Part shown: piece after piece, positions 16,092 to 62,576 of the stretch
Layout of the letters: each line of letters opens with the position of its first letter
Position numbering within the stretch: position 1 is the stretch's first letter
DNA from: Scyliorhinus canicula
Lineage: Eukaryota
Assembly: GCF_902713615.1 (NCBI RefSeq)
Contig: NC_052157.1
Location: forward strand, 64,343,703 to 64,407,702
Direction: 5' to 3'
Length of the DNA stretch: 64,000 bases
The notes under the pieces: model-generated
Databases searched by the model: none
What the model saw: only the letters and a program-made list of their open reading frames with translations
What the model was told of the DNA's origin: nothing
Position numbers and translations under genes: made by a program

Positions 16092-16126
16092 CTGGGGAAA
16101 AAAATTGAAAACGTAAATGGGGCCAA

Positions 16127-33430: not shown

Positions 33431-33832
33431 TCATTTAAACTTTAAAAAAATTATTGAATGCTTTTAATGTTCATACAGGCCTCTATGTGGAACCTTCTCC
33501 CTCTTAAAAAGCTGTTGAGGCAAGGGGGGGGGGGTGCGTCAGTTGGAAATTTAGATGTTATTTTTTGTTTTATTTGGTTACCGAGAATTAAGATACGGCT
33601 TAGCCATTATCTATTTGAAAGGCGAGAGAGTTTTGAGCGGCTGAATGGTCTCCTCCTGTTCCTATGCTTTTTAGATCCATTTTGCTCTGGTTTCTGGTTC
33701 CATAGTTAATGGTGTTGGTAAGCGATATGTTCAGGCGTTTTCGTAGTGTGTTACTAAGAACGAGTGCGTTGCGTTGTGCAGTCCTGTCCTATAACACTGT
33801 TCTGTTGTTTTACAGGTCTGGCCAGAAGGGAA

Positions 33833-34071
33833 ATGGAAGCCAACAATCTAACCAACGCCCCTTACCCAGAATCCACTGGAAGTGGCGACGAATTGAGGAT
33901 TGTTGGTAACTTTGCCTCTCCGCTCCCTTCAGGTATGGCCTACCGGATGGTGACCACACGCTCCCCGACTTGCGCTCGCTGTCGTAACCATGGCATCACA
34001 GTGCCACTGAAAGGACACAAGAAAACCTGCCAGTGGCAGACATGTCAGTGTGACAAATGCATCCTAATCCT
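33833..34071 (+). CDS. dmrtc2: DM-domain transcription factor (DMRTC2/Dmrt7-like), first coding exon (exon starts at 33816)
   Basis: Acceptor ttgttttacag|. Encodes MEANNLT...[37 protein letters not shown](L); phase-2 donor CT|gtgagt. DM identity is certain; the subfamily call comes from signature residues and synteny. Confidence 0.88.
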
Positions 34072-35246
34072 GTGAGTAACTCAGATGGCCGTTGAACAAA
34101 AAATAAAGCACTGGGAAACATTTTTACGGCAACAGGTGCAAAATTAAAAACAAACAGGTGTTATATTAAACTTATAGAGAAGCTTGTTTTGATCATGCTT
34201 ATGGCACTGCATAGGTCTGGGATCCACATTATGAAGATGGTCAAGAAATTCACAATGGTGAATTATTAGAACTGTGAAGTTGCACAATCTGGGGCACCTT
34301 TTCTCTGGAAAGGAGGAGGTTGAGGTCTTTGAAACTATGAAAGGTTTTTGATAGGGTAGACATAGAAAAGATGGGTGAGATTTTCCGCATCTCCCCCCCC
34401 CCCGGTTCCTAAAGGCACAGAGGAAATGTAGTCAGAAAATACTGCAGAGAAATACCTGGAAGCTGAAGGCAGGGGCTTCAAATTCTTTATTGCAGCAGAA
34501 GACTCTATTCAAGCTCTTTTGGATGTTCATCTTTGGAGTGCATTGTCAACCAAACTTGCAAGGGTGAGTGAAATATTTTCAAATTCCAAGCTGCAGAAAG
34601 ACCTGAATCTTTGTTAAAGTAATTCAGTGTCTGAATTACTTACTTGAATGAAACCCGTAGCTAAAAGCTGAGCTGGAAGCTGAAAGCGTGGTGTCCGATC
34701 TCAATCAAAACAAAAGAAAAATTAAGGAACTATTTAAGGAACGCCATGACTGTCCAGCTCAGTTTAAAAAAAAAGCAGAAGCTCCATTCGACCCACTCAA
34801 CAGGTTAAAAAGTGAACAGCTGAACAAAAGAAGTCTGTCGGCATTCGGTCCAGTCAACCATTGTTAATTTTTTAAAATCAAGATTAGTGCCATCACCATT
34901 GTGCTGTCACCAAAACCAGCAAGCACAGGAAATCCCTTTGTGAGTGAATGGTGATGCCATCTTAAAATACAGAAATGGCTCCAGAGAACGTTTAAAATAC
35001 TAAAGACACAAGAAAATTGCCTTCAATTAGGTCCACCAGCTCAGAGGGGGAAAAACTGACACAGGCTATTAGCTTGAAGGTTCTACAAAGTGTAACTGAA
35101 AAAAACTCCCCATCAGGAAATGTGGCTTCCTTGAGATGAGAATTTTTAAGTTACTGGAGTGTATTAGGTCTCAGTAAAAAGAAATGTGAAGAGGTCCAGG
35201 TTAATATCTTTTTCTCCTGGTTTGGTAAACTTGCAGACGTAATCCC

Positions 35247-38200
35247 TGTTAAGTAATGGGTTAAGAGACATTGCAATTAGTTGTCTCATTTATGCTAAGT
35301 GTTCAATGATTGTCTCATTTATGCTAAGTGTTCAATGATTGACACTGATATGTAAAGGGGCTTCAGGTGGACTCTGTATCTGGTGACGTGATGATTGAGT
35401 TTAGTGCAGAGTCTGTTAAAGTGAAATAAAGGTGTTTGTGAAAAAGGAGCTGGGCTTTTGTCTCTTCGTACCACAGCATCGATTACGTCTAACAATTGGT
35501 ATCAGAGGACGGTTGCTGTGTAAATGTGAAGGGTTGAAAAATACAATTTTTCCAGATCAAACCAAGGAGTGAAAAAAAAAAGGGATATATGGCTGAACCC
35601 AGGACGAAGATGGCCAGATATGATTATCCTCCCTTATTTTCTGAAAGGGAATCATACGACCAATGGAGAAGTGCGGTAGTTATGTGGACTAAGGTGACTG
35701 CTTTAGGAAAGAGAAAGCAAGGTATGGCATTGGCTCTTTCTTTACTGTATGGCAGTAAAATCCGAAACAAAGTGCTTTCTGAGCTGGAATTGGAAGAGTT
35801 AGACTCAGAAGAAGGTCTGGCGACTTTATTACTTTATATGGATAAGATTTATAAGAAAGTAGGCTTGTTAAGTGCGTATGAAGCATGGTTGGATTTTAAT
35901 AAGTTCTGGAAAATGGAGGATTTATCTATGGAAGACTACATAATGGAATTTGGCAGACTTTATAAAAGGCTGCAGAAACACAGGCTGGAATTTCCACAGT
36001 CTGTGTTGGCCTTTAAATTACTTGACTGTGCTAGAGTGAGCAACATGGATAGGCTCTTGGTTTTGACAGGAGTTCAGTTTACGGATAACGATACCTTATT
36101 CGAACAGATGACAACAGCTTTAAAAACAATTTTGGGGAAACATTCAATTCCAATGGCTCCGATTACCCAAATAGGTCAGCCTGCAATAAGGCAGAATATG
36201 GAAGATACACTACTAACAGGATGGCAAAATCGTATGGCTACGAACAGGCCTCAAGACTATAAAAGGAGACCGAGAAAAGGAAATTATGAAGACACAAACC
36301 CAGTTAGAACCTACAATAGGAGGATGAACCCCAGAAATGCACGGGGCATGATAAATTGATGTTTTTGATGTGACTCTCAATACCATTATGCTTTCAACTG
36401 TCCAACTCGTTATGATAGAGTATTTGAAGCGACACATGACACGGAAGAGTCAGAAGAGGAAAAAGATAGTGACCAGAAAGAAGGCATTGTCCTATTAACA
36501 AGTTGTTTTACGCTGGTAATGAGGGTGTTGGTTGCAGAATCTTTTAACTGTGCTGTATTGGACAGTGGCTGCACGTCTATTGTGAGTGGGATTGACTGGT
36601 TAAAATGGATGCTGAAAATCGTAACAAAGTTAAGGAATTTAAAAGTTCCACAAGTTTCAGGTTTGGGGATGATAATACTCTGAAGTCGCTGAAAAGAGTG
36701 GTGATCCCGTGCAGTATTGCTGGAGTGAATCATTTCATTTCATTTCATTAGCACGGATGTTGTATCAAGTGAGATACCTTTGCTTCTGAGCAGACCGTCT
36801 ATGAAGAAAGCACACATGAAGCTGGATATGGAACAAGATAAGGCAACAGTTTTTGGAAAGACGATGGACTTACAATAATGTCCCGACTGTATAAATTGTA
36901 TTCCATTATTGACAAATAATGTTTCAAGTAGAGTGGTTAAGGATGTGTTAATGGCAGTTGATAATGCAACTTTAGCTGATAAAAAGCTTATTGTAGTAAA
37001 ACTGCATAGGCAATTTGCACATCCGTCTCCTCGGAGGCTAAAAAATTTATTAAAGGATGCAGGGGTAAGGAATGACGACTATACTAAGCTGATAGAACAG
37101 GTTAGTGATCGCTGTGAAGTTTGCAGGAAGTACAGAAGGACACCAGCACAACCGATGGTAACCCTACCGTTGGCCAGGGATTTTAATGACATTGCGGCCA
37201 TGGACCTTAAGATCTAGGATAAAGCAAATAATATATTTATTTAGCAACCAGACTTAGTCAATCAACGATTGTACGAAGTAAAGAAGAGTAATTTTGGATA
37301 AAATTGTGGAAAAATGGATCGGGACAAGAATGGGTCCACTAGCAAAATTCTTTACGGACAATGGGGGAGAGTTTAGGTATATGTGTGAAAACTTGAATAT
37401 TAGAGTTATGAACACGGCTGCAGAAAGCCCGCTTAGTAATGGTGCCTGTGAAAGAAATCATGCTGTTATCGATGACATGCTTCGGAAAATTTTGGGAGAT
37501 CGACCAAACTGCACGCTAAATTCAGCTTTAGCATGGGCGGTACATGCAAAGAATTCATTGCAGATGGTTGGGGGCTATAGTCCTTATCAATTAGTGTTTG
37601 GTAGAAATCCTAAAATTCCCTCCATTTTGGATGACCAGCCTCCAGCTTGGGAAGGGACTACAATTAGCTCCGGTTTTGCTGAACATTTAAACGCGTTACA
37701 TAGCAGTAGAAAAGCTTTTTTGGAAGCAGACGTCTCTGAAAGAATTCGCAGAGCTTTAAGACGTAATGTACGGCCATCAGATGCCGTTTTTCAACAAGGA
37801 GACATGGTATACTATAAGAGAGACAATTCTAATGAATGGAAAGGCCCAGGGAAGATCATAGGCATAGATGGCAAAACATTTATTTTGCAACATGGTAATC
37901 AAACTGTTAGGGTACATTCATCAAGGATAATGGATACCGATTACAAATTTTCAAATTTAGACAGAGCAGACAGACATGACGAGGAACCAGAGTCATCTGG
38001 TAAGCATTTGTTACATAACTATGAGGACCAGTTAACTGATCTAGACAGGGTTTCTGTAGAGGAACACGACACTTCTGATAAATTAGATCAGGCCATTTTT
38101 CCAAAAGGGCAACTGTCAAAGGTTGGTACAAAAGTGACATTCTTGCCTGAAGGATCTAGTCAATGGAAGGATGCAACTGTTATTAGTAGAGCAGGGAAGG

Positions 38201-40735
38201 CCACTGGAAAGTATAAACATTGGTTGAATGTACAGCATTCAGGGGAGGAAGTTAAGACAATGGATTGGGAAAACGAAGTTCAAAAATGGAGGGCACAGAA
38301 ACGCAGTGCCAGTTCAGATAGTACATCGGATAGTGAACAGGTTCGCAGGAAAAGGTCGAGAACTATTGAAAGGACATCCCGTTACAGAAAAGAAAGATCT
38401 AGCAGTACAGAACGAGATACCTGGCAGGAAAGGGGACGTAGTTTTATCAAGATCTCGGAACAGGAGTAAGACTACGAATACTAATAGAAGTAGAAGCCCA
38501 CGTGCACGTGAGATTTTGGTGGCTTCAAATAAATTAGATGAAAAAGTTATCAAAGATGCTAAACAGCAAGAATTGCATAGTTGGAGTGAATTTGGGGTAT
38601 ATATGGAAGTACCGGATAGGGGACAAAAAGCTCTATCCCACAGATGGATTTGTACAGAAAAGGTTCTTCCAGATGGAACTTATAAGGCAAAGGCCAGACT
38701 TGTGGCAAGGGGATTTAAAGAAAACTTAGACGATCAGGACTTAAGGGTAGATTCACCTACAGCAGGAAAGGTTATTTTAAAGATCTTGTAGGCTCTATTA
38801 GCCACAAAGGCATTGGAATGCAAATCTATAGATATAAAAGCTGCCTTTTTGCAGGGGCATCAGCTCCAGAGAGACATTTTTCTCCGTCCTCCTAAAGAAA
38901 CAGCTAACACAGAAGGGGTACTGTGGAAGTTAAACAAATGTGTATATGGATTAAATGATGCATCTATAGAGTGTGGTACTTTTCGGTAAGGTCAGTTTTG
39001 TTAAAGTTAGGCTGTTACCAGTTGAAAACAGATCCTGCAATGTTTTACTGGCACTATAAAGGAAATCCTTGCTGGCATCTTTATGATGCATGTCGATGAT
39101 TTTTTGTGGGGTGGGACTAGTGATTTTGAAGCCATTGTAATCTCTGGTTTGAGGAAAGAATTCAGGGTTGGATGTCAGGCTTCCGATGCATTTAAATATA
39201 TTGGACTGGAAATCGGACAGACTCAGTTAGGGGCAACTTTACGTCAGCAATCTTACTTGGAAAGCATCAGCCCAATAGCAATTAGTCGTGGCCGGGTTTC
39301 ACAAAAAGACGCAATAGTTTCGAAGATAGAAAAAGAGCAACTGCAAAGTTTAATTGGGCAACTGAACTGGTTAGGTAGACAGACTAGACCGGACGTGAGT
39401 TTTGATGTTTTAGAGTTGTGTACAAAGATGAATGATCAGCACTGTAGCATGGTGGTTAGCATAAATGCTTCACAGCTCCAGGGTCCCAGGTTCGATTCCC
39501 GGCTGGGTCACTGTCTGTGTGGAGTCTGCACGTCCTCCCCGTGTGTGCGTGGGTTTCCTCCGGGTGCTCCGGTTTCCTCCCACAGTCCAAAGATGTGTGG
39601 GTTAGGTGGATTGGCCATGCTAAATTGCCCGTAGTGTCCTAATAGTAAGGTTAAGGGGGGGAGTTGTTGGGTTACGGGTAGAGGGTGGATACGTGGGTTT
39701 GAGTGGGGTGATCATTGCTCGGCACAACATCGAGGGCCGAAGGGCCTGTTCTGTGCTGTACTGTTCTATGTTCTATCCCAAAGTGGAAGACATAATAAGA
39801 GCAAATAAAGCGTTGGCCAAACTAAAAATGCAGGAGGGTGTTTTGAAGTTTCCTGTTTTAGGTGATCCTGGGCATTTGAAACTCATAGTTTATAGTGATG
39901 CATCCTATGCGAATTTATGTGATGGAATTTCAAGTGCAGGAGGTTTTATAAATTTCCTTTTGGGGAATAATGGTAAATGTTGCCCTCTTGTGTGGGAAAT
40001 AAAGAAAATAAGGAGAGTGGTCAAAAGCACTTTGGCTGCTGAGAAGTTAAGTTTAGTGGAAGCGGTGGATATGGCCTTTTATATAAGTCAGATATTGACA
40101 GAAATTAGGGGATTTGGGTAATATACCTATTGACTGTCACATTGACAAATCCCTGTGTGAAAATGTGCACTCTACAAAAAGTGTCAATGAAAAGAGGTTA
40201 CGGATAGCCATCGCAAGTTTGAAGCAGATGTTGGACAGAGGGGAAATAACAAAAATTAAATGGGTTGACAGTAGCTATCAACTGTCAGACTGTTTTACGA
40301 AAAGAGGGGCTAGTTCACAGAAACTTTTAGATATTGTGAATGAAGGGCGCCTGTTTCTGTGAATTGTTTTTTTTTCTCTTTTTAAAAAAAAAAGGGCGGG
40401 AATCAGGTGTGTGTTTTAGTTTCTTGAAATTCTAGTTTCTTGAAATTTTGTTTTCACCTAATTGTTTTTCTCCAAGGAAGGGGAGACTGTTAAGTAATGG
40501 GTTAAGAGACATTGCAATTAGTTGTCTCATTTATGTTAAGTGTTCAATGATTGTCTCATTTATGCTAAGTGTTCAATGATTGACACTGATATGTAAAGGG
40601 GCTTCAGGTGGACTCTGTATCTGGTGACGTGATGATTGAGTTTAGTGCAGAGTCTGTTAAAGTGAAATAAAGGTGTTTGTGAAAAAGGAGCTGGACTTTT
40701 GTCTCTTCATACCACAGCATCGATTACGTCTAACA
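35247..40735 (+). mobile_element. Full-length Ty1/Copia (GalEa-like) LTR retrotransposon, inactivated
   Basis: 248-bp LTRs at 35247-35494 and 40488-40735 (~3 differences by eye), TSD ATCCC, PBS TGGTATCAGAG, PPT aaggaaggggaga. Domain order gag-CCHC, PR (LDSGC), INT (LHRQFAH, TDNGGEF), RT (HVDDF), RH (YSDAS). Stops and frameshifts. Confidence 0.95.
39437..39776 (+). mobile_element. HE1-like SINE inserted in the Copia RT region
   Basis: Removing it rejoins ...KMND/PKVEDIIRANK. Confidence 0.88.
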
Positions 40736-40999
40736 ATCCCAATGAATGGCATTGATGAATCCCCAACCTGCTTCGTGGGACTGTTAACAGCATTTGATGC
40801 AAGTTTTAACCTTCAAGCTCAAGATTGCAGAACTTAAAAAGAGGCATAGAAAACCCAGAGCAGAATGATGAAAGAGAATAAGACAGTACCTAAACAAACC
40901 ACAAGAGGACACCAGATGATCAGGCACCTTTCCAAAAGCCCTTTTTGAAGACTCAATATGTTTCCGGAATCTCCTAGCAGCTGACCGTGAACAACTATG

Positions 41000-41340
41000 G
41001 GGCAGCACAATGGCACAGCTTTTAGCACTGCTGTCTTACAGCGTCAAGGACTCTGGTTCAATTCCGGCCTTGGTTGACTGTGTGGAGTTTGCACTTTCTC
41101 CCCGTGTCTCCATGGGTTTCCTCCGGTGCTCTGATTTCCTCCCACAGTCCAAACATGTGCAGATTAGGTGGAATGGCCGTGCTAAATTGTCCCTTAGTTT
41201 CCAGGGATGTGCAGTTTAATTGTGGTTACGGGGATAGGCGGGGGAGCGGGCCTACGATGCTCGTTCAGAGGATTTGTGCAGACTCAATGGGCCGAATGGC
41301 TCTCTTCTGCACTGTAGGAATTCACTGTAGGGATTCTGCC
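41000..41340 (+). mobile_element. Older tRNA-derived SINE
   Basis: gggcagcac head and diverged body. Confidence 0.75.
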
Positions 41341-42929
41341 GTAGAATAGGAATTCTATGGTAACAACAAGGACTAAATCCTGCTACAGGTGGAGCAAGAA
41401 AAAACAAGTATAATCAGAAAATGTTCATATCAAAGCTGAACTGGAAGATTTGAAGAGATGGATTAAAGCTGGGTATAAACCTTTGAAAGCGTACAATAAA
41501 CCTTCAATGATAAACTGTTCAAGATCTGAAAAACACACTTCCTCTGTCTACGTGTACCTTTGTGACGTTTCAGAAATAATGGCCCTCAATTCCATGGTTG
41601 TCAAATTGTGCTGGTGGAGTTGGGGTGGGGGAAACTCAACCATATGTGCTGCCAACAGTAGGAAGAAAAAGATACTTAAAGCAGTTTCAACATTGGAAAA
41701 ACACTGTAGGACCAATATGCACCCTTTGCAAACACAAGAGGAGTTAAAAGAAACTTCTGCTGAAGGACTTTCACACGCTACAAATATCCCTCAGATCACA
41801 GTTTGTTCCTTGGGAAGTGATGAAGTGAAACAAATTGAATTTCATGCCATTCTGAATCACTAGGTGGCAGAGAAGACTCTGAAATGTCCTATATTCCAGG
41901 AGGAAGCCAAGAAGCAGACTACAGCCCTGAAGAAAACGGTTGCAGATTTGGAAAGAATCTTGGAAAAAAACATTACATTTTCAAATGAGATCTACGAAGA
42001 GAGAAAAATCAAGACCGTAGAAGGGCAAGCCAAGGTAGACACTGTCACAAATGAACGTGGAGCGTCTCAAAAACAATTGGCAGAAGTGTAGTTACAGGAT
42101 ATGAGCTTGAAGAGTGGCACAGAGGGTCTACACTCTCCCAATGAGATATTTTGAATTTAGAGGTGTAGTCACTTGTAATGCAGGAAATTTGCATCCCGCA
42201 AAATGCATTGTAAAAATAACCGTATAATTTGCTTTAATGATGTTGGTTGAGGGCGGAGATGGGTCAGGAATCTGGGGTGAACACCCTTGCTGTACTTCAA
42301 GGAACTTCTGTGGGATCTTTACGTATCCACCTGGCAGCGCAGTCTCTGTCACATCCATTCCAAAAGACGACACCTTTGACATTGCAGCACACTCACTACT
42401 GTACGACAGTGTCACCTAGATTGCTAATTTGTTCATTTCTGTTTTACACTTTCAGGCAGAAAGGGTTAGTCACAACTATAAAATAACCTGGTCAATTACA
42501 GTAGGGACGCAGATATCTGTGCATGTGGGTTTAATTTTTATTCCTTTCAAAAGTTCAAATCTGACCCATTAATCAAAAGCACTGAAGCCATGAGGTAGCT
42601 ACAAAGTTTTGGAATCTAGTAATGATAGGTGGCAACTGAATAATGAAGTTTAAGATAAGAATTGAACAGATTTGGGTGACTTCATAAACACTCTGCACAA
42701 TCTTCAGTGCCATTAAAGTATTAAGATTCTACTTTGTTCTTTATTTGCTTTAGATATTCTTTAATGATTGGCAATGACATTCTACTTTAAATAGCACTTT
42801 TTAACATGAATCAAGTAATTTTTAGATAACCACCAGGGCAAGATAGTAGTTGTCGCCCAGGTTGTGCACTGACGAAAACATTCAATGTTCAATTATGGGT
42901 CTGCTGTGCTGGGTTATTTTGGGGGAAAC

Positions 42930-43315
42930 TTTACTTTGTACCTGACACCGTGCTGCACCTGTCCTGGGAGTGTTTGATGGGAACAATGTAGAGGGAGTTT
43001 TATTCTGTATCTAACCCCGTGCTGTACCCTTCCTGGCAGTGTTTGATTGGGGACAGTGTAGAGGGAGCTTTACTCTGTATCTAACCCTGTGTCATACCTG
43101 TCCTGGGAGTGTTTGATGGGGACAGTGTAGAGGGAGCTTTACTCTGTATCTAACCCTGTGTCATACCTGTCCTGGGAGTGTTTGATGGCAACAGTGTAGA
43201 GGGAGCTTTAATCTCCATCTAACCTTGTGCTGCTTCTGTCCTGGGAGTGTTTGATAGGGGCAGTGGAGAGAGAGTGTTGCTCTGTATCTAACCTGCTGTA
43301 CCTCCCTTGGGAGTG
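42930..43315 (-). repeat. ~68-bp tandem repeat, same family as 20878-21135
   Basis: gtcctgggagtgtttgatggggacagtgtagagggagctttactctgtatctaacc units, ~5-6 copies. Confidence 0.85.
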
Positions 43316-43610
43316 ATAACAAGAATGTGCTTATTGAGAACAGCAGGCAAAAGCCATTCGGCTCAATATGGCCTTCCTTATTGACAGATCAGCCCTAGGT
43401 ACTGCCTTGCCTACAGATGCCAAATAAGGGTCTCGATCCTTAATGACCAAATTTTCAGTTCTGTTACATGCAGTGCCCAAAAGAATTAAAAACCGCCATG
43501 AAGCAGAAACCTCGATTGAATTTGCCCTGTTAGATAGCACACCATGTTCTGACTCAGTATTTGGTTGAATGGGTTCCACTGATTCTGAGGTACCTCTGTC
43601 TCTGCCCTAG

Positions 43611-43753
43611 CGAACGGCGTCGGGTCATGGCAGCTCAGGTAGCTCTGCGGCGGCAGCAAGAGGCTGAACTGAAGAAACGGCTGGCAAAGGGCCTCCTGAA
43701 ATTTGGCGAGGCGGCAGGGAGAAAGCTGGGAGGGGCTGGAAGGCAACCACTCG
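43611..43753 (+). CDS. dmrtc2: DMRTC2-like coding exon 2 (DM recognition helix)
   Basis: Acceptor ctctgtctctgccctag|C completes Leu; ERRRVMAAQVALRRQQEAELKKRLAKGLLKFGEAAGRKLGGAGRQPL; donor G|gtaagt. Confidence 0.88.
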
Positions 43754-44159
43754 GTAAGTTATGCACAAATCTCATATCATTCCATTTCCCTTTTGTGTGG
43801 GTATTCTAGGATAGTGTCATATAGTCACTTGGTAGTACAGAACTTAAGTATTGCCCAATAAACTTGCTGTTGCAGCTTTTCGTCTTGCTCTTATCAGGAA
43901 AGATGCAAGAATGCCAAATTTCAAAGGGAGCAGCAATTTATAATGCAATAGAAAAGGGTGTTAGTTCGTTAACTGTGGTGAAAAGTGTTGCCATGGAGAA
44001 TGTACCAGAGAACTATTGCCCCCAAGCTTGTCTAATTCAAAAACTATGCAATGCCGGAACATGTTACTTTTACTTGCATATTAATATATGTATCTTCAAA
44101 CAAGCTAAGAGCGAGCCTGACTGATAATCATAAATTAGTTGTTAGTGTAATTCTTTTTT

Positions 44160-46846: not shown

Positions 46847-49800
46847 TGTGGTGATATGATTTGCATAGCTGTCTGCCATTGGGGCAGAACACCGGCTTAC
46901 CATTGGCCCTGGTCGGTCATGTGCCTCTCGACCGATTGGTCGAGAGGCTGAGTTAACCACGCCTCCTTGCCGAGGTATAAATAGTCAAACGCCCGGCGGT
47001 CGTCCATTTTATTGTAGACAACCGCAGGGCTAAGTTCTAGCTTATTAAAGCCTAACTTTTGTAAAGCAACTCGTCTCTCGTGCAATTGATGGCTCATCAA
47101 TTTAATAAACTAGATTTTTGAAGATGGAGTTCCGGATCAAGCCCTAATGCCTCCGCATCAGCCCGCAAACACCGAACTCTGCAGAACTTTTTCAACATTG
47201 GCTGGCATGTCTCGAAGGATACCTTGAATCTGCAACCAGCCCCCCCACCATGGCACAGAAGCTGCACATCCTCCACTCCAGCGTGGGTATCGACGCCTAC
47301 GCGATAATCAAGGAGGAAAAGGATTATGATGCAGCAATACTAAAGTTAAATGGACAATTCATTAAACCAGTCAACAGGGCATTCGCCCGACATCTGCTGG
47401 CCACCAGACAACACCTCCCCGGTGAGTCACTAAACCAATATTACCAGGCCCTCGCTATCCTGGGGAGGAATTGCTCCTGCGTCGCAGTCTCAGCTACGGA
47501 GCACATGGAACTACTGATCAGAGACGCTTACGTGGCTGGGATGCAGTCCCCCGCTATCCGCCAGCGGATGCTGGAGAGAGACGACCTCAGCTTAACTGAG
47601 GCACGGACTCTCTCCACCTCCCTGGAGGTCGCCGATCAAAACGGCCGCGCCTATGTCCCCAGCCGGGCCTACTGGCACGCTTCCCCACCGCCATACCTCC
47701 CTCAGGCCTGTGCTGTGGGGGTGGCGAGCTGGGAGGAGCGCGGTGCGCTGGAGGGGACCCGGAGGAGCGAGAGAGGCGAGCAGGCCAGGCGCGGGGGTGG
47801 GGGGGAAGAGTTGCGCGGCTTCTAGGAGGGGACCGGGAGGGCCCGGAGGAGCGAGAGAGGCCCGCAAGTCGGGCGCCGCCATCTTTGGACGCCGACCTCA
47901 CGTGCGGGTCCTGGGCGCCGCCATCTTGGGATCCCGACCCCACGTGCAGGTCCTGGGCGCCACCATCATGGGGCCCCGACTCCACGTGCGGGTCCTGGGC
48001 GCTGCCATCTTGGGATCCCGACTCCACGTGCGGATCCTAGCCACCACCTTCCGGGACTGGCACGAATACGGATTTTCTCCATGGCTCGCGGCCATTCAGC
48101 TCGACTAGTCACGTCCACGCACGCTCGCCAAAACGACAACGCTCATCTACCTCAACGGCCACGAGACGGGCTGCCTGCTGGACTCCGGGAGCACGGAAAG
48201 CTTCGTTCACCCTGCCATGGTAAGACGCTGCGCGCTCCCTGTCCATCCTGTAAAACACAAAATCGGGTTAGCCTCGGGTTCGCACTCCGTCCGCATCACC
48301 AGGTGCTGCATCGCAGACCTCACGGTCGAAGGGAAGGTTTTAAAAAATTATAAATTCCTTGTCCTCCCTGACCTTTGCGCACCGGCACTCCTAGGACTGG
48401 ACTTCCAATGCAACCTGCAGAGCTTGACCTTCCAATTCGGCGGCCCTATACCCCCCCTCACTGTCTGCAGCCTCGCGTCCCTCAAAGTGGACCCCCCCCT
48501 CCTTGTTTGCTAATCTCACCCCCGATTGCAAACCTGTCGCGACACGGAGCAGACGGTACAGCGCCCAGGACCGATCCTTCATCAAGTCCGAGGTCCAGAG
48601 GCTGCTGACGGAAGGGGTCATCGAGGCCAGCAACAGTCCCTGGCGAGCCCAAGTGCTGGTGGTCCGGACTGGGGAGAAAAACCGGATGGTCATCGACTAT
48701 AGCCAGACCATCAACCGGTTTTCGCAACTGGACGCGTATCCTCTCTCCCATATTTCCACCATGGTAAACGATATCGCGAAATACAAGGTCTTCTCCACTG
48801 TGGACCTTAACTCCGCTTACCACCAGCTTCCCCTCCGCGCGAGTGACCGCAAATATACCGTGTTTGACGCAGATGGGCGCCTCTACCACTTCCTCAGGGT
48901 TCCATTTGGTGTCACAAATGGGGTCTCGGTCTTCCAACGGGAGATGGACCGAATGGTCGACAAGTACGGATTACGGGCTACCTTCCCGTATCTTGATAAT
49001 GTCACCATCTGCGGCCACGATCAGCAGGACCATGACGCCAACCTCCAGCAATTCCTCCAAACTGCAAAACTCCTTAACCTCACATACAATAAGGATAAGT
49101 GCGTGTTTAGCACCGACTGTCTAGCCATCCTCGGCTACGTAGTGCGTAAAGGAGTGATAGGCCCCGACCCCGAACGCATGCGCCCCCTGATGGAACTCCC
49201 TCTCCCCAATATCCTCAAATCCCTCAAACGCTGCCTGGATTTCTTCGCATACTACGCCCAATGGGTTCCCAACTATGCTGACCAGGCCCGTCCCCTCATT
49301 CAAACCACGACCTTCCCGCCGTCGACAGAGGCCTGCCAGGCCTTTAGCCACATCAAAGCGGACATCGCAAAGGCCACGATGCGCGCCATCGACGAGTCCC
49401 TCCCCTTCCAGGTCTAGAACGACGCATCAGAAGTAGCTCTGGCAGCCACCCTGAACCAAGCGGGCAGACCCGTTGCCTTCTTCTCCAGAACTCTCCAGGC
49501 TTCCGAACTCCGCCACCCCTCTGTGGAAAAGGAAGCCCAGGCCATAGTCGAAGCGGTGCGACATTGGAGGCACTATTTGGCCGGCAGGAGGTTTACCCTC
49601 CTCACAGACCAACGGTCAGTAGCCTTCATGTCTGATAATGCACAAAGGGGCAAGATCAAGAATGACAAGATCTTACGGTGGCGGATCGAGTTTTCCACGT
49701 ACAACTATGAGATCTTGTATCGGCCTGGGAAGCTCAATGAGCCTCCTGATGCCCTGTCCCGCGGTACCTGCGCCAGCGCGCAGATAGACCGCCTCCGCTC

Positions 49801-51337
49801 CCTCCACGCAGACCTCTGCCATCCAGGGTTGACCCGTTTCTACCATTTCATTAAGGCCCGCAACCTGCCTTTCTCCGTCGCGGAAGTCAGGACAGTAACC
49901 CATGACTGCCACATCTGCGCAGAGTGCAAACTGCACTTCTACCGCCCCGAGCGCGCACACCTGATCAAAGCATCCCACCCCTTCGAACGTCTCAGCATTG
50001 ACTTCAAGGGGCCCCTTCCCTCTAACAACCGCAACATTTACTTCCTGGCAGTAATTGACGAATTCTCCCGCTTCCCCTTCGCCATTCCCTGCCCCGACAT
50101 GACCACATCGACCGTCATTAAGGCCCTCCTCTCCGTCTTCTCCCTGTTCGGCTACCCCGCGTACATACACAGCGATCGGGGGTCCTCTTTTATGAGCGAC
50201 GAGCTGCGTCAATTCCTGCTCAACAGGGGCTTTGCCTCTAGCAGGACGACCAGCTATAACCCCCGGGGTAACGGACAGGTCGAGCGGGAGAATGGTACCA
50301 TCTGGAAGACCATACTACTGGCCCTCCGGTCCAGAGATCTCCCTATTTCCCGATGGCAAGAGGTTATCCCCGATGCCCTACATTCTATCCGCTCACTCCT
50401 CTGTACCGCAACTAATCAGACACCTCATGAACGTCTACTTGTTTTCCCCAGGAAGTCATCCTCCGGATCCCCTCTCCCGACGTGGCTGGTCACCCCCGGA
50501 CCCATCTTGCTCCGGAAGCATGTGCGGGTGCACAAGTCCGACCCGTTGGTGGAACAAGTCCAGTTACTCCACGCTAACCGCAGTATGCGTATGTGGAGTA
50601 CCCCGACGGTCGGCAGGACACGGTCTCCCTCCGGGATCTGGCACCCGCCGGCGTGCGGCCTTCCCCCCCTCCACCACAGACCCCCCCCCCTGTTTTTTTT
50701 CCCCCAGCGCCCCACTCAGGTTCCCCCTGCCCCATCCATGGCGTCACCACAGCCAGCTCGGGTGACGGAGACTATTCAAGGACCATCGCTCCAGGACGTC
50801 AGCGGAACCACCACCATCGGCCGACCTGACGTCACCTCCTCCGCTGCGGCGGTCTGCCAGAACGTCACGGGCTACGAAAAGACTGATCGAATCGATCTAA
50901 ATTTCAACAGCTCCATGGACTTTGTTGGGACTTTGTGTAATATTGCTTATTGTCTGGGCCAGTGGGAAGCCTCCAAATTTGATAAAAGAAAGGAGAGAAA
51001 ATTTTTGTCCTCTCGTCTGCTACTCATATCACCGGTTTTCTCTTTCCCCCACCACCCCCCGGCTTCTTTCTCCGTAAGGGATGAATGTGGTGATATGATT
51101 TGCATAGCTGCCTGCCATTAGGGCAGAACCCGGCTTACCGTTGGCTCTGGTCGGTCATGTGCCTCTCGACCGATTGGTCGAGTGGCTGAGTTAACCAAGC
51201 CTCCTTGCCGAGGTATAAATAGTCAAACGCCCGGCGGTCGTCCATTTTATTGTAGACAACCGCAGGGCTAAGTTCTAGTTTATTAAAGCCTAACTTTTGT
51301 AAAGCAACTCGTCTCTCGTGCAATTGATGGCTCATCA
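46847..51337 (+). mobile_element. Full-length Ty3/Gypsy LTR retrotransposon, inactivated
   Basis: LTRs at 46847-47099 and 51086-51337 (~8 differences by eye), TSD TCAAC. gag, PR (LLDSGS), RT (YLDN), RH (DAS..EKEA..TDQ), INT (H..C..C, IDFKGP, SDRG, GQVER). Inserted in a CR1 tail. Confidence 0.95.
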
Positions 51338-55157: not shown

Positions 55158-55261
55158 TCAATAAAGCCAGGGTGAAGAGCGAAGTTCAGCTTTCAGATTC
55201 CAGAGAAGCAGATGTGATGAAGTGCATCGCCATCCAGCAGACTCCAGGGGTTGTTGTCAAG
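55158..55261 (+). CDS. Probable DMRTC2-like coding exon 3
   Basis: Acceptor tttctttacaatttcag|, phase compatible with the previous exon, open frame VNKARVKSEVQLSDSREADVMKCIAIQQTPGVVVK, donor AAG|gtaata. Unique sequence among repeats. Confidence 0.55.
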
Positions 55262-55717
55262 GTAATAGCACAGAGAGTGGAATATGATGTTCAGGATTCA
55301 TCCTGTTGTTTCTTTATGTCCATCTGGTAAATGTTCATGGATGCTGGCATTCATTCAAAGCACTCTCATTGTTGAAACTGTTGTGTTCGGACTTCTAATG
55401 CTTCGGCCATTAGAACCAATATTGGGGGGGGGGGGGGGTGAGGGCAAAGGTTCTCCTTAATTTGAAGTTAGCTGGACAAGACTCCCCATCACCGTGGCCA
55501 TTGTTACTTTGAAACTGCTGCAAGGCAACAGTTTACCAGCTGAACATTCAGAGTGTTGCTCTATGCGTTGTCACAGACAGGAGGTAGGCCAATTTAAATA
55601 GGCCTGATTTCCCCACGCTTTACCCTTCCATAAACAGAAAGGTGTTTCTTTAAAGTCTGATTTCCCGTGTCACAAATGGTGGTGTACGTACCCCAACCCG
55701 TAAATTTGAAAAGGCGG

Positions 55718-56190
55718 CAGGGTAGCACAGTGGTTAGCACTGCTGCTTCACAGCTTCATGGTTCCCAGGTTCGATTGCTGGCTTGGGTCACTGTCTGTGC
55801 GGAGTCTGCATGTTCTCTGTGTCTGCGTGGGTTTCCTCCGGGTGCTCCGGTTTCCTCCCACAAGTCCTGAAAGACGTGCTGTTGGGTGAATTGGACAATC
55901 TGAATTCTCCCTCTGTGTACCCTAACGGGCGGTGGAGTGTGGCAACTGGGGCTTTTCACAGTAGGGGCTGGTTTAGCTCACTGAGCTAAATCGCTGGCTT
56001 TGAAAGCAGGCCAGCAGCACGGTTCGATTCCCGTACCAGCCTCCCCGGACAGGCGCCGGAATGTGGCAACTAGGGGCTTTTCACAGTAACTTCATTGAAG
56101 CCTACTCGTGACCATAAGCGATTTTCATTTTTCAGTAACTTCATTGCAGTGTTAATGTAAGCCTACTTGTGACAATAAAGATTATTATTA
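55718..56190 (+). mobile_element. SINE with a second short SINE (55964-56132) nested in its tail
   Basis: Inner element flanked by the direct repeat CAGTA. Confidence 0.8.
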
Positions 56191-57019
56191 TTTTTAAAAA
56201 TCCTCTTTGAAGAATTTACACAGCAAACTCAAGGAAAGATGAAAATAAAAGAGTTGGTTTATTCTTATACACACACGAGGGGTTTTGCAATGCCCATTCC
56301 TTTTTATGCTCGCAATTTTAAAAAAGTTGTTATTTGCGGGATGTGGGCGTTACTGACTGGACCAGTAATCATTGCCCGTCCCTAACTGCCCTCTATTTCA
56401 GCCAATAACATTGCTGTGAATCTGGGGTCACATGCTGGCCAGACCAGAATTGGGTTTTTACACCAATCGACAATGGTTTCATGATCATGCCTAGATTTTT
56501 AATTCCGTTTTTTAAAAATGGAGTTCAAATTTCAGCATCTGCCACAGTTCTTACCCTGGATCTCTGGATTACTCGTCCAGTGACAATGCCATCGCCTCCC
56601 ATGGGGATAATGGAGGAGAAGGATAAAGGAAGAGAGTTCAGGGCACAATAAACTGTAAATATGGGTTAACTGAAATGTTCCTTCCGAGGGGAGGTTGGCT
56701 GATAGTAGAATGTTGCGTCTTCCCAGAGTGAGGCTTGCATGACAGAAGAAGACATGCAAAACGAGTCAGTCAGAAGGTATGAGTTCCATGGTTCCAGCAG
56801 TTTGGCAGGTTTGATGAGGGTCTGTTATTTCTGTTTCCACCAGCTTGCGGGTAGACAGCACAGGCTGTTGCCTGGAGATATGTTCACTTTGGAGGTCAAA
56901 ACAGTAACTGCCATGATTCAGTTCCACCAGACGAGATCACGGTGCAGCTTGGGGGAGCTCATGTGACATATCTTCTCAATGGTGGACACGGAATGAGTGG
57001 AATCTTAGTTTTTAAAAAA

Positions 57020-60000
57020 ATTATTTTTATTAAAAGGGTTTTCTACATAGAAATATCAGAAACCCACAGGAACAAAGAACACAGGCCCACAGCAAACCCG
57101 TGATACCAAGCCTACAACTCTCCCTTTTATTCTCTTATTCCCCCCTTCATCTTCTACCTCCCCTCTAAACAATGAAAACAAGCCCCCCCCCCCCCCCCCC
57201 CCCCCCCCCCAAGCCCCGCCCTGCTGACACCCTAATTCACCTTGAGGAAATCAATAAACTGCTTCCACCTCTGGGTAATTCCCTCCTCCGACCCCGCAAG
57301 GCCAACATGACCTTCTCCAAGTACAGGAATTTCTGCCAGGTTGCTCACCCACACCCCCTACTCACCTACACATAGAATCTCGGATGTGACACGGACATGC
57401 CCAGAACATGAAGACATGATTTGTGGCAGACTGCGCACATCTGTCCTCCAGCCCTGCAAAGAACCGGCTCATCCTCGAAACCTTCATGTGGGCCCTATGC
57501 ACCACCTTAAACTGGATGAGACTTAACCTCGCATAATATGAGGACAGGGCTTCCTTCCAAGACTCTGTCCTCACCTCCCACCTAACTACTCCTCCCATTT
57601 GTGCTTGATCTCCACTGGTGCGCCCTCTCCATAAAATATCTGACCCTCTCCCCTCCCTAATGTCGTCTTCAGACAACTTATCTTGCAACACCGGAAGCGG
57701 AGCCCGGGAAGGACGACACCTCTCTCCTCACAGATTCCTCACCTGCAGATATCTGAACCCATTCCTCTTAGGCAACTCGTATGTTTCTTTCAGCTCTTAC
57801 AGGCCTGCAAACAATGCCTGATGTACTCTATTCCCACCTCCTGCCACCCCATTCACCTTCCTAAAAAATATTTGGAGACAAAGATGGGGAGGTTCTGGAA
57901 CACGAACAAGAACCTGGGCAGCACTTGTCATTTTAACCATCTGCACACCCAGCCAGTGACAGCAGCAACACATCCCACCTCTTAAAAGTCCGCCTTCATT
58001 CCCTCTATCAATCATACCAAATTCAATTTATGCAGCTGTGTCCAGCTCCGCGCCACCTGAATCCTGAGATACCGAAACTTGCTTTCCCCACATGGATCGG
58101 CAACTCCCTTAGCCTCCTCCTGGCATTAATCGGGAACACCTTGTTTTTCCCCATGTTCAATTTGTACCCTTATCCTATCAAAGCTGCCCACCAGGTCCGA
58201 GATATATAACAGACGATTGCCTGCTTACAGCGGGACTCTATGCTTGATCCCACCCCGCTCGATCCTTCTCCACTGCAGCTGCTGGGCCCCCCCCTGAATC
58301 ATCCACAAATCCACCCAGTGCAAGGTAGTGTCAGACCCCGTGATCGCCAAATACTCCGAATTGACTACCTCCTCCAACAGCATCTTATCCATCACAAGAA
58401 AAATCAGTCTGGAGTACACCTGGTGCAGATGCGAGAAGTATGAGAACTCCTTCGCCCTCGGCCACCCAAACCTCCATGGATCCCTGCCCCCTATCCCCCA
58501 TAAGGTCTATGAACCCTCTCAGCTACCTTGTCACTGCCGATACCTACAACGACCTGGGACACGACCGATCAGTTCTCGGATCCAAAACCAGGTTAAAATT
58601 GGCTTCCACTATCAGCCGGTGCTTGTCCAGATTCAGGATCTTCCCCAACACCTGCTCATAAAGTCCATGTCATCCCAATTTGGGGCACCGACGTTCACTA
58701 GGACCACAGACGTCCCCTCCAGCTTCCCACAAACCATCACTAACCCGGGTCGGCTACAATACTGCCAACCTCAAAGGCTATTTTCTTCTTGACCAGCACT
58801 GCCACCCCCCTCGTCTTCATGTCCAACGGTGAGTGGAACCCCTGCCTCACCCTTCCCTTCCTCAGCCTCGTCTAATCTCCCAGTTTCAGGTGTGTCTCCT
58901 GAAGGAACACAACGTCCGCCTTCAAACTCCAAGTGTACGAAAGCATGCAACCGTTTGACTGGCCCATTGAACCTCTCAAATTCCAAGTAACCAGCAGGGT
59001 TTGAGCCTCCCCGCTCCCTTCCTCTGCCGATCAGCCATACCCCTTCTTTAGGCAGCTCCCTCCGGTCTGTGTCATGCACGTCTTCAAGCCTGCCCCCATA
59101 CGTCTGCCACTGTCTCTCCTTAACCAACTGCGCCACACCATGTCAGCACACCCCCCCCCCCCCCTCCCCATATCCAACCAAAAAAGAACAATCTCTTGCA
59201 CCCCACACACGCACATACACACACACTCCCTCCTCCTAGCAACTCCCATTTCACTCCTTTTTTAAAAAAAAATAACTTTTATTGAAATTTTCGGCTGCTG
59301 CCGGCCTAATTCCCTACCGTTCTGCCAGGAAGTCAAGGAAAGGCTGCCACCGCCTAAAGAACCTCTGAACTGATCCCCTCAGGGCAAATTTCACCCTCTC
59401 CAATTTGATGAACCCTGCCATATCATTGATCCAGGCCTCCACGCTTGGGGGCCTCGCATCCTTCCATTGGAGCAAGATCCTCCGCCGGGCTACTAGGGAC
59501 GCAAAGGCCAGAACACCGGCCTCTTTCGCCTCCTGCACTCTCGGCTCCACTGCAATCCCAAATATTGCGAGTCCCCAGCCTGGCTCGACCCTGGATCCTA
59601 CCACCCTCGACACCGTCCTTGCTACCCCCTTCCAAAACTCCCCCAGCCCAAAACACCCCATTTCACTCCTGTTAACTAACCCAACCAGCTAGCATGGTGG
59701 CCCCCGCCTTGGGCCTCTGACTACTCCTCAAGCCCCAATCCGCTCCTCAATCCCCATCCCTCCAAACAACATACAAGGAAAAAGAGAGGCACACACTCAC
59801 CCTCGCCAATCCTCTCATCCTGCATGCCTATATTTTAGACTAAACACCACTCGAAAGATCAATGTCCTCATACTCCACCCAGTCCTTAGTCTCTCACAAA
59901 GTCTTTAGTTTGCTCCAGTCAGTCAGAATAAAATTCTTGTTTTTGGTGTGTAATCCACAAACGAGAGAGGTACAGAACCGCAAGCTTCGCCCCCTTGAAG

Positions 60001-60800
60001 AGATTAACCTTGATCCTGTTGTACCCGGCCGTCTGCTTGGCCAACTCTGCTCCCAGATTCTGATAGATACGCAGCTCGCTCTCCTCCCATGTCCACTTCT
60101 TGGTTTGTCTCACCCACTATAAGATAGTCTCTTTGTCAAGGAAACAACACAACCACGATTGCCCTCGGTGGCTCCCCCAATTGTGGCCTCCTCCTCAGCA
60201 CCCTGTGCGTTCAATCCAATTGGGGAGGACGGTCAAAGACGCCCTTCCCCATCAGCTTCTCCCCCACCAGCTTCTCCCCATCAGCATGCTCGCCACGTAC
60301 TTGGCAGCCTCAATCCCTTCAGGCATCCCCACGATCCGCAGGTTTGACTTCCTGGAGCGGTTCTTGAGATCCCCCAGCTTCATCCTCAGCCTTTTCTGAC
60401 GGCTTGTCACCATCCCCATTTCCGCCTCCAGCGAGGTCAACCGATCCTCATGCTCCCCCACTGACCCCTTCACCTTTTGGATCGCCAGGCCCTGTGGCTC
60501 CTGCCTCTGCTCCACGCACTCAATTGCCACCCTAAGCGGCCACACCAACAAGGCAGGTCCTCCGAGGCCACCTCCTTTTACTGCCGAAACTTGCTATTGA
60601 GGAATTCCACCAGTTGCTCCGTAGACCACCAGGTGGGCAGCGCTGCTCATCTACTCTCCGCTATTTTCTCCTGTGTTGTATCACAATTGCTCTCTTGCTC
60701 AAGCTGCTGTCTCTTTCTAAACACCTTGAGCAAGAGCCACCAAATGTGTGACCACTCGCTCCATGGCTGCCACCGAAGGTCCTGGAACCCTATTTTAAAT
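57020..60800 (-). mobile_element. Internally deleted L1/Tx1-like LINE (ORF1 ~60800-59850, ORF2 remnants ~59000-57250), with a second L1 3' end at 59265-59660
   Basis: NRSRKSNLRIVGMPEGIE (L1 ORF1), APE-like remnants, LIQFKVVHRAH...HMFWACP, LAFASLVARRRIL...WQPF. Confidence 0.8.
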
Positions 60801-62365
60801 GGGAGTCAGGATTCCTTTTATTTGGAGACACTGGTGCCGGGTTAACTAACTGTCCCTCTGTTTGTCAAAACCGTGGTGTTAGGACTCCTAACACTTCCGC
60901 CATGAGCACCATTATGGGAGATTTAAGACCTGCAAAGGTTTTCCTCTGTTCTGAGTTTGGTGGACCAGACTCCCCATTCACGTGGCCATTGTTTGTTTGG
61001 AACTGCTGCAAGGCATCAGGTGATTGGCTGAACCATTTTGTCCACTCAGCCATTGTCTATTTTGAAAAAGCACAAAACAAAACTTTGTAAAATAGTCCAG
61101 CTAATTAATATGGGCGTGATTCTCCGTGGCCTCCGGCCACCTGTTTCTCGGCAACCGGATGCAGAATATCGCTCACTGGCGGTGGGATTCACTGCTCCTG
61201 CCTCTGTCAATGGGAATTACCATTGAGGCCCCACTCTGACCAGAAATCCCATAGTCAACGAAAGGCTGGAGAATTCCAGCCTATATATTTTTTAATCTTT
61301 CACATCACCACCCTGACAGTATGGCTGGGGAGAAAGACAGACTGGGTTTACTTACCTTAACATACTGTCACGGAACAGAATGCTGTCCGAATTAGTCCAG
61401 TACAGAATGTTGATAAGAACGTTGATAAGGTTGGGTGAGAACTTCTCTCCTAACTCCCCAAAGCCTGTCCACCATCTACAAGTTAATAGTGTGATGGAAT
61501 ACTCTTCACTTGCCTGGATGAGTGCAGATCCAACAACACTCAAGAAGCTCGATACCGTCTCGGACAAAACAACCCGCTTGATTGGCACCCCATCCACAAA
61601 CATTCACTCCCTCTACCATCGATGCACATTGGTAGCCATGTGTTACATCTACATGATACACTGCAGAAACTTGCCAAAACTCCTTCAACGGAACCTTCCA
61701 AACCCGCCACCAGTACAACTTAGAAGGACACATGGGAAGACTACCACCTGCAAATTCTCCTCCATGTCACTCACCATCCTGACTTGGAAATATATCGGCC
61801 GCTCCTCCATTGTGGCTGAGTCAAAATCATGGAACTCTCTCCCTAACTGTGCTGGATGTACCTACACCTCATGGACTGCAGCGATTCAAGAAGGCAGCTC
61901 ACCACTGCCTTCTCAAGGGACAATTAAGGACGGGCAACAAATGCTGGCCTTGCCAGCGATACCCATATTCTAAAGAATGATTTCAAAATGTCAGACAGTG
62001 AGATAGATTGAGATTGCTCAGCTGCGAACAAGTACTCACTGATTTATCCAGAGGTATTTTCCAGGGTTTCTGTCTGGGTTTTTTATGCCTCTATGGAAGA
62101 AAATGATCCTAATAAAAATCCACAATGTGGGTTGTGTATCTCTGACATGCCATGCTGATTCACTCCAGTGTATAGTGGTACTGTAACTGGAAATAATGCA
62201 GAGGCGTGGACTTGTACTGTGGAGAATGAGAGCTGAAACTTCCAGTGCAGCAGCAATTAGTGTCCCTGCATCTCAATGTGCCGGCGGGCGGGGCTTCTCA
62301 CAGGCTCAGGTGGATGAGTCGCTCATGTGACTGACACTAACCAGTTGTTGTTGCTTTTACTGCAG

Positions 62366-62576
62366 AGAGAGACACAATCCCAGTGCAGGATCCAACAGCA
62401 GCAGCATGCTTCTTTCCCACCGGCACTAATTACTTGCACATCCTGTCCAGACGTGGGTGCCCAGACTTTGCACAGTGTCCCTCCGTCAACCGTGGTCCAT
62501 GGTTACCCCAGCCACCATGCACTGCTCTGCCAAGTGTTCCCTCAGCACAGCCCACATCTCCTGGAGACGGTACTGG
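62366..62576 (+). CDS. Probable DMRTC2-like coding exon 4 (Pro/Ser/Gln-rich); reading frame uncertain
   Basis: Acceptor ttgcttttactgcag|, donor G|gtgagt. The phase-0 frame RETQSQCRIQQQQH...LETVL is open, and so is a second frame (...RGPWLPQPP...). Confidence 0.55.

Follow-up and report, generated by a model that had tools for sequence, protein, structure and literature searches.

The DM-domain gene and its transcripts

The stretch of DNA analysed here (hereafter, the window) comprises 64,000 nucleotides of the genome of the catshark Scyliorhinus canicula (NC_052157.1, positions 64,343,703 to 64,407,702 of the forward strand) and contains no runs of N. Positions 33816–62576 of the window very probably hold the 5′ half (coding exons 1–4 of 8) of the catshark orthologue of DMRTC2/Dmrt7, a gene that is transcribed, evolves under purifying selection, and specifies a DM-domain transcription factor of 591 residues. 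All of its exons and introns in the window lie on the forward strand. Coding exon 1, together with 17 nt of 5′ untranslated region (UTR), occupies positions 33816–34071, with the ATG at 33833 and the donor GTGAGT; it is covered by RNA contigs and is 100% identical to the RefSeq protein. Its coding part of 239 nt covers residues 1–79 and two further bases and comprises an N-terminal tail and, as far as CILI, the DM domain's zinc module; an alternative start (M35, at 33935) yields the RefSeq isoform X2. Intron 1 (34072–43610; 9,539 nt, phase 2, GTGAGT...AG) falls within the Leu codon of LI-L-ERRR and divides the DM domain, the recognition helix of which (ERRRVMAAQVALRRQQEAELKKRL) is encoded, together with the start of the linker, by coding exon 2 (43611–43753; 143 nt). 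This exon is preceded by a polypyrimidine tract and AG and followed by GTAAGT. Coding exon 3 (55158–55261; 104 nt), which encodes linker only, was located with tblastn and has the borders cag/TCAATA and GTCAAG/gtaata; its 5′ end is trimmed in the shorter zebra-shark isoform X2. Coding exon 4 (62366–62576; 211 nt) encodes linker and the first half of the DMA domain (LLCQVFPQHSPHLLETVL) and ends in phase 1 at the donor at 62576.

When the segments 33833–34071, 43611–43753, 55158–55261, and 62366–62576 were spliced, they reproduced the catshark RefSeq protein, including its isoform X2, over 198 of 198 residues; the 591-residue protein is catalogued in RefSeq as XP_038669743, "DMRTA2-like isoform X1". 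Spliced mapping on the chromosome record placed coding exons 5–8 beyond base 64000, up to 12.5 kb further, and their sequences were taken from that record (LR744041.1), which matches 40,168 nt of the window without a difference. The splice from 33833–34071 to 43611–43753 had been proposed in an earlier sequence-only reading of the window, and it proved correct to the letter, because the exact 62-residue string was recovered across canonical GT/AG phase-2 sites. The spliced DM domain is intact and retains all six Cys and two His zinc ligands (8/8). The Pfam DM model (PF00751) matched the exon 1 piece alone with E = 2.1e-18 and the full protein with 81.2 bits (cut-off 27). The outer coordinates of that reading are also genuine exon borders, 33816 being the edge of an RNA contig (33815/33816) directly after an AG and 62576 being the donor of exon 4. 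Its further claim, that an intron within the DM domain hides the gene, was right about the intron and its length, but the databases do hold the gene, both as the catshark RefSeq model and as copies named "DMRTC2-like" in other elasmobranchs. An Rfam scan of the window returned no match.

Transcription was examined with contigs of four public RNA runs mapped on positions 30500–36000, that is, on exon 1 only. In runs X1, X2, and X3, contigs matched 33815/6–34071 with no mismatches and then continued with non-intron sequence. Runs X2 and X3 contained contigs of 1771 nt, starting within exon 1, and of 1854 nt, starting at 33815, and a 410-nt contig of run X1 extended beyond the match by 126 and 27 letters at its two ends. 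The adjacent intron sequence (34180–35099) had zero RNA depth in runs X1 and X2, and exon 1 itself had zero depth in run X8, from another sample of the same study. Because the contigs break in this way and run X8 shows zero depth, the donor at 34071 and the acceptor at 33815/6 are in use, a 5′UTR exon exists upstream, and expression varies with the sample. The spliced transcript expected from the sequence-only reading was therefore found at exon 1, where the RNA contigs break precisely at the borders; the acceptor at 43611 rests on the protein model, conservation, and canonical sites, not on a read-level junction. Just upstream of the gene and outside its transcript, positions 30868–33443 consist of dispersed repeats, at which the summed contig depth was very high in all runs (maximum approximately 65,000, at 32156–32339) and many joints and loose ends were present.

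Four modules, DM, DMA, DMRT-like, and C-terminal motif, make up the architecture of the elasmobranch protein, and all of them are strongly constrained. Between the catshark and the zebra shark (Stegostoma), the ratio of nonsynonymous to synonymous substitution rates (dN/dS) was 0.17 overall, with values of 0.009 for the DM domain, 0.037 for the DMA domain, 0.038 for the EAAEAL core, and 0.017 for exon 8, the last exon. These values also bear on the suspicion that the gene is an annotation artefact, in which a model fuses a neighbouring DM+DMA gene with a DMRT-like gene, or that it is a decaying pseudogene. Fused or over-extended models of the locus do occur in Chiloscyllium (with TRIM domains) and Narcine (with a 300-residue N-terminal extension). 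However, the same collinear protein is present in five elasmobranch species, the RNA contigs beginning in exon 1 reach approximately 1.8 kb, enough to span nearly the whole 1776-nt coding sequence, the series of exons and phases equals that of the single-gene amniote DMRTC2, and dN/dS is low overall and below 0.04 in all four modules. An artefact or pseudogene is therefore extremely improbable.

Relationship to tetrapod DMRTC2

A careful maximum-likelihood (ML) tree was constructed under LG+C20 from 49 DM domains and 64 alignment columns. In this tree, the six elasmobranch and 18 tetrapod DMRTC2 rows formed a single clade with support of 98/99, and approximately unbiased (AU) tests rejected the union of the shark rows with DMRT1 (p = 0.031), with DMRT3/3b (p = 0.034), and with DMRTA1/2 (p = 0.015). 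Over its 62 residues, the catshark DM domain shares 45–53 identical positions with tetrapod DMRTC2 and 39–42 with DMRT1, 2a, 3, 3b, A1, A2, and 93B; the sequence-only reading had put the identity to human DMRTC2 at about 49/62, which falls within the measured range and is the value for the gorilla.

An exhaustive phmmer search with exon 1 against 1.84 billion representatives returned a zebra-shark protein as the best match, with 81% identity across all 79 residues, and its top ranks contained only elasmobranch copies and tetrapod DMRTC2, so that the reciprocal comparison pointed in the same direction as the earlier assignment. Among the phmmer matches, the RSPTC...RRRVMAAQVALRRQQE signature occurred without exception in elasmobranch copies or named tetrapod DMRTC2. 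The copies of Stegostoma, Hypanus, and Pristiophorus bear the source name "DMRTC2-like", and those of lizards, snakes, turtles, crocodilians, monotremes, marsupials, eutherians, and one newt bear the name "DMRTC2". No DMRTB1-like domain (RTPKCSRC...ERQKIMAAQK) was found among the top 150 matches of the exhaustive search, most of which are unnamed, and a protein query of the KCSRCRNHG/ERQKIMAAQ type returned nemertean, mollusc, and other invertebrate DMRTs and no DMRTB1. The published DM signature of DMRTB1/DMRT6 (PMC6737965 supplement) and its four exons (PMC7689362) differ from those of the catshark gene.

Two other candidates for Dmrt7 were set aside. A high-ranking sturgeon match was rejected as a duplicated DMRT1 model, and a metagenome protein of an unidentified eukaryote (APTC...QRRQVM signature) was dropped because its DM domain lies in one uninterrupted open reading frame (ORF). 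The DM domain of an unidentified eukaryote on the metagenome contig ERZ25073769 (6001–6396), which carries a Dmrt7-like RAPTC...LIIQRRQVMAAQ signature in one uninterrupted ORF, weakly adjoined the DMRTC2 clade in the first tree.

In terms of gene structure, exact spliced mapping gave eight coding exons with the intron phases 2-1-0-1-2-0-1 in the catshark, the zebra shark, and the echidna, and Anolis DMRTC2 has the same phase series plus one additional intron. The last exon is 188 nt long in the catshark, zebra shark, and Anolis. In the shark, Anolis, and echidna alike, the DM domain is interrupted behind base 2 of one and the same Leu codon (LI-L-E/QRRR); in turtle DMRT1 the cut follows MAAQ (phase 0), and in teleost DMRT2a it follows RRQQATE. 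White-shark DMRT3b has three coding exons and elephant-shark DMRT93B has two, neither gene being cut within the DM or DMA domain. Eight exons have been reported for dmrt7 and two to five for dmrt1–6 (PMC7689362). The intron positions of the catshark gene thus agree with those of amniote DMRTC2, as the sequence-only reading had anticipated.

The similarity extends beyond the DM domain. The Pfam model of the DMRT-like C1/C2 region (PF15791, cut-off 27) matched the catshark protein with 35.2 bits and that of Pristiophorus with 31.1 bits, the motif being encoded in exon 7. When the non-DM parts were compared with hhalign, E was 1e-9 against sauropsids and the newt, where the C-terminal ...SVSLNIGQLGSMSLP motif matched, and 2.5e-9 against mammals, where the EAAEAL motif matched. 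In the alignment, LSEEQLHKEAAEALMVL and the C-terminal ...SVSLNIGQLGSMSLP are kept in the shark, newt, lizard, alligator, echidna, and colugo. PF20624, which is present in the DMRTA1/2 matches, was not found in the catshark protein.

Linkage to RPS19 provides a further point of comparison. On the reverse strand, positions 1065–1136 hold the exon in which the RPS19 coding sequence begins (71 coding nt; borders ag/ATG...AAGAA/gtatgt); tblastn identified it by its identity to mammalian RPS19 at 22 of 24 residues. This exon lies 32.7 kb upstream of the DMRT gene, in head-to-head orientation, and the remainder of the RPS19 gene lies off the left end of the window. Its extent coincides with that of human exon 2 (c.1–71). 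Because it has its own splice sites and this same extent, the exon belongs to an intron-containing gene rather than to a processed copy. In mammals, fused models that combine DM, DMRT-like, and Ribosomal_S19e domains show that DMRTC2 and RPS19 are adjacent. Because RPS19 lies upstream of and divergent from the shark gene, with a G-protein-coupled receptor (GPCR) gene between them, the shark block has been rearranged; the intervening receptor, an orphan of class A, was uninformative for synteny. In Anolis, the gene order is GBP, DMRTC2, PAFAH1B3, CIC; PAFAH1B3 and CIC are, like DMRTC2, genes of human 19q13.2. The gene for the guanylate-binding protein (GBP) adjoins DMRTC2 in both Anolis and the echidna, and PAFAH1B3 and CIC lie directly downstream in Anolis.

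Taken feature by feature, mammalian DMRTC2/Dmrt7 (mouse, human, platypus) resembles the shark gene in its DM signature, which ends in LILERRRVMAAQVALRRQQEA.LKK and is identical at 45–50 of 62 positions, in the phase-2 intron in the Leu codon, in the eight exons and their phases, in the EAAEAL motif (PF15791), in the C-terminal ...IG.LGSISL, and in having RPS19 as a neighbour. It differs in several respects: the shark protein is approximately 220 residues longer and has an intact DMA domain, whereas mammals have only "LCRLL.QEP..."; the shark RPS19 is upstream and divergent, with the GPCR gene between, whereas the mammalian RPS19 is immediately downstream; and the shark introns are 1–11 kb long and contain retroelements. 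The RefSeq models of sauropsid and salamander DMRTC2 (Podarcis, Anolis, turtles, crocodilians, Lissotriton) contain the closest DM domains outside the elasmobranchs (47–53/62). These proteins of 560–855 residues have the same intron positions and the same C-terminal exon, ending in S.SL.IGQ.GSISLP, but, unlike the shark protein, they have no Pfam DMA match, only a GC.G-containing remnant, and sauropsids have QRRR where the shark has ERRR.

The DMA domain and the origin of the shark gene

The Pfam DMA model (PF03474, cut-off 23) matched the full-length catshark protein with 47.4 bits and the proteins of the zebra shark, sawshark, and numbfish with 38–46 bits; the exon 4 piece alone gave E = 9e-4. 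The sequence of the domain is nearly invariant among the sharks and a ray, and its nearest matches outside the elasmobranchs were in Ciona and DMRTA1 (E of about 3e-7). None of the tetrapod DMRTC2 proteins scanned had a Pfam match to DMA. The sequence-only reading had overlooked this domain, the coding sequence of which starts in exon 4.

This bona fide DMA domain, a hallmark of the DMRTA subfamily and DMRT93B, is an argument for reading the gene as the RefSeq name "DMRTA2-like" suggests; its resemblance to DMRTC2 would then be no more than that, and the gene would be a paralogue, in elasmobranchs, of DMRT3/4/5 or DMRT93B. The DMRTA subfamily (DMRT3, DMRTA1, DMRTA2) and DMRT93B/DMD-4 indeed share both DM and DMA with the shark protein, the latter under the same Pfam model; moreover, the recognition helix of Callorhinchus DMRT93B also reads ERRRVM, and the AU test did not reject the union of the sharks with 93B (p = 0.16). 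On the other side, the same tests rejected unions with A1/A2 and with DMRT3/3b, and the DM identity to this group is lower than that to DMRTC2. The genes of this group have RTPKC or RKPKC and ERQRVM signatures and a coding sequence of two or three exons, whose borders fall outside DM and DMA (three in shark DMRT3b, two in chimaera DMRT93B), as opposed to eight exons with the phases of DMRTC2 in the shark gene, and they lack PF15791 and the C-terminal motif, which the shark protein has in common only with DMRTC2; linkage to RPS19 is likewise a feature of DMRTC2. Their neighbours are cdkn2, faf, and ttc39 (PMC6737965), differing from those at the shark locus. A separate DMRT93B with the RKPKC...AWLKGH signature is present in skates and the chimaera (PMC6737965 supplement). 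All in all, membership of the DMRTA class is very improbable. We specifically rejected the identification of the catshark gene with the DMRT93B described for the chimaera, skate, and coelacanth (PMC6737965), which has another DM signature and a two-exon structure: DMRT93B carries RKPKC...SWLKGH/AWLKGH, consists of two coding exons, and lies in tandem with dmrt4, whereas the catshark gene has RPS19 and the GPCR gene as neighbours.

The orthologue of DMRTC2 that we favour would itself have descended from a gene with a DMA domain. Intron 4 interrupts the shark DMA domain (LLETVL/ERCHGD) in phase 1, 17 residues past "LC". In the echidna and Anolis, a phase-1 intron is also located 17 residues past "LC", within the stretch LCRLVRQEP.../FCPLLPPEH..., and in sauropsids GC.G follows. 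Because the same phase-1 intron cuts both the shark domain and this degenerate amniote stretch, DMRT7 probably descends from a DMRT of the DMA class, and the domain would have decayed in tetrapods. Tetrapod DMRTC2 thus seems to carry a decayed DMA domain, as judged mainly from collinearity and the shared intron. According to Bayer et al. 2020, as cited in PMC9361473, the DMA domain adopts a CUE-like fold, and those of C. elegans DMD-4 and human DMRT3 are ubiquitin-binding. On balance, we lean slightly towards the view that the elasmobranch Dmrt7 is the ancestral form, an old jawed-vertebrate paralogue of DMRT3/4/5/93B; its DMA domain would have decayed in tetrapods, several lineages of fishes, frogs, and birds would have lost the gene altogether, and DMRT7 would be no invention of the amniotes.

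The intact DMA domain in sharks and its absence in tetrapods could also be explained by hidden paralogy, in which the elasmobranch gene and tetrapod DMRTC2 are reciprocally kept ohnologues rather than one-to-one orthologues. Two further observations agree with this explanation: the gene order differs, RPS19 standing head-to-head with the shark gene, with the GPCR gene between them, as against GBP, DMRTC2, PAFAH1B3, and CIC in Anolis, and the sharks were not resolved as a separate sister group of the tetrapods in the DM tree. Nevertheless, RPS19, a single-copy gene by assumption, neighbours the gene in both sharks and mammals, the phase and order of all seven introns are common to both, and a second DMRTC2-like protein was not found in any elasmobranch or tetrapod searched. 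Hidden paralogy is therefore very improbable.

Several points weigh against the favoured interpretation. The DM alignment is short, at 64 columns, the tree was built without DMRTB1 and dmrt2b sequences, and the support for the clade dropped to 85/79 when three very long unidentified rows were kept. The sequence-only reading had expected the DM domain to group with DMRTC2 rather than with other DMRTs; the grouping itself and the exclusion of DMRT1, DMRT3/3b, and DMRTA1/2 held, but a union with DMRT2 was not rejected (p = 0.065), nor was that with DMRT93B, which was represented by the single long Callorhinchus row. The synteny consists of one gene, arranged head-to-head with a GPCR gene between in the shark as opposed to tail-to-head in mammals. 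The shark DMA domain and the tetrapod "remnant" are weakly similar: hhalign of exons 4–5 paired the residues that were expected to correspond, but with P = 0.023 and a probability of 2%. Finally, three elements lie outside the window, on the same chromosome record: the PF15791 motif, the C-terminal motif, and the remaining half of the DMA domain. Set against these points, the identity put forward in the sequence-only reading, a Dmrt7/DMRTC2 orthologue, was upheld by the tree, the reverse search, the introns, the transcripts, the RPS19 linkage, PF15791, and the C-terminal motif.

Distribution, predicted role, and other features of the window

Named orthologues were found in the sharks Scyliorhinus, Stegostoma, Pristiophorus, and two Chiloscyllium and in the rays Hypanus and Narcine, and, among tetrapods, in a salamander, squamates, turtles, crocodilians, and all three mammal groups. 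Exhaustive, word-indexed, and C-terminal-part searches of annotated proteins yielded no copy from ray-finned fishes, the coelacanth, the lungfish, frogs, birds, or Callorhinchus; a query of residues 225–591 returned elasmobranch matches only, the word filter being weak on low-complexity sequence. This pattern suggests that DMRT7 was lost several times among jawed vertebrates, and it counts against this part of the interpretation that the losses are drawn from missing annotated proteins, not from genome searches. Given the orthology of the shark gene with tetrapod DMRTC2, Dmrt7 was present in the last common ancestor of the jawed vertebrates, and the distribution fits an origin no later than that ancestor, followed by several losses.

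The sequence-only reading had described Dmrt7 as a gene usually regarded as restricted to mammals or amniotes, and the literature does describe it in this way: dmrt7 has been attributed to mammals only (PMC7689362) or to mammals and reptiles only (PMC6737965) and has been omitted from pan-vertebrate trees. Our literature search found no description of a cartilaginous-fish Dmrt7/DMRTC2, nor of a DMA domain in DMRT7. What is new here is a true DMRT7 orthologue with the DM, DMA, and DMRT-like architecture, which is undescribed for the family; what is already visible is the automatic RefSeq annotation, which labels several elasmobranch copies "DMRTC2-like" and the newt copy "DMRTC2". The RefSeq name "DMRTA2-like" for the catshark gene is misleading. 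The RefSeq names of the elasmobranch orthologues are inconsistent in general (A2-like, C2-like, or uncharacterized). In two Chiloscyllium bamboo-shark models, the orthologue is fused to a TRIM-type RING/B-box gene, and the spurious N-terminal extension of approximately 300 residues in the Narcine numbfish model has a faint retroviral-envelope-like match.

An elasmobranch orthologue shifts the origin of Dmrt7 back by >100 million years and replaces a gain in amniotes with repeated loss elsewhere. The intact DMA domain of sharks offers a clue to the source of DMRT7 within the family and to a ubiquitin-binding module that tetrapods would have lost. By analogy with other DMRTs, the zinc module and recognition helix of the shark protein would bind DNA. 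The DMA domain may add a ubiquitin-dependent control of stability or of partners, which tetrapod DMRT7 would have given up, and the EAAEAL and C-terminal motifs are putative DMRT7-specific interaction surfaces. In the mouse, Dmrt7 has been linked to pachytene arrest and localization in spermatocytes, as cited in PMC9361473 and PMC6737965. If the mouse is a guide, there are roughly even odds that the shark gene acts in meiotic male germ cells; a meiotic or sex-chromatin role would rest on this analogy, and it counts against the fuller interpretation that the tissues of the expressing samples are coded. A very old XY system has been reported for sharks and rays (bioRxiv 10.1101/2025.03.13.642935), so these animals offer a way to test if DMRT7 already served male meiosis and sex chromatin before mammals arose. 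If the orthology is true and the gene is expressed in shark spermatocytes, the link to meiotic sex chromatin could match the elasmobranch XY system in age.

Several other features of the window were noted. Within intron 1 of the DMRT gene, positions 35589–40121 (forward strand) contain long ORFs of 256, 391, 187, 183, and 142 aa, which probably belong to an unclassified transposable element; the two that were scanned, of 256 and 391 aa, had no significant Pfam match. Intron 2 contains the remains of a pol gene (48503–51118, forward strand) with reverse transcriptase, RNase H, and integrase core regions, including an open frame of 532 aa. Upstream of the gene, a split reverse-transcriptase ORF at 23343–25243 (forward strand) represents retroelement remains. 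The GPCR ORF between RPS19 and the DMRT gene (15374–16342, reverse strand) matches 7tm_1 in its C-terminal half (model positions 135–260, E = 1.5e-20), so its N-terminal half must be on another exon; among named clusters, those closest to it are orphan class-A or adenosine-receptor-like. This ORF is bracketed and partly overlapped by satellites. A 33-bp satellite forms two inverted arrays, at 12808–14029 (37 copies) and 16127–17643 (46 copies), and 37/36-bp arrays lie at 14383–15069 and 17766–18000. The satellites account for the long "ORFs" at 12914–14076 and 16161–17417, to which Pfam assigns noise matches of the hexapeptide/pentapeptide type.

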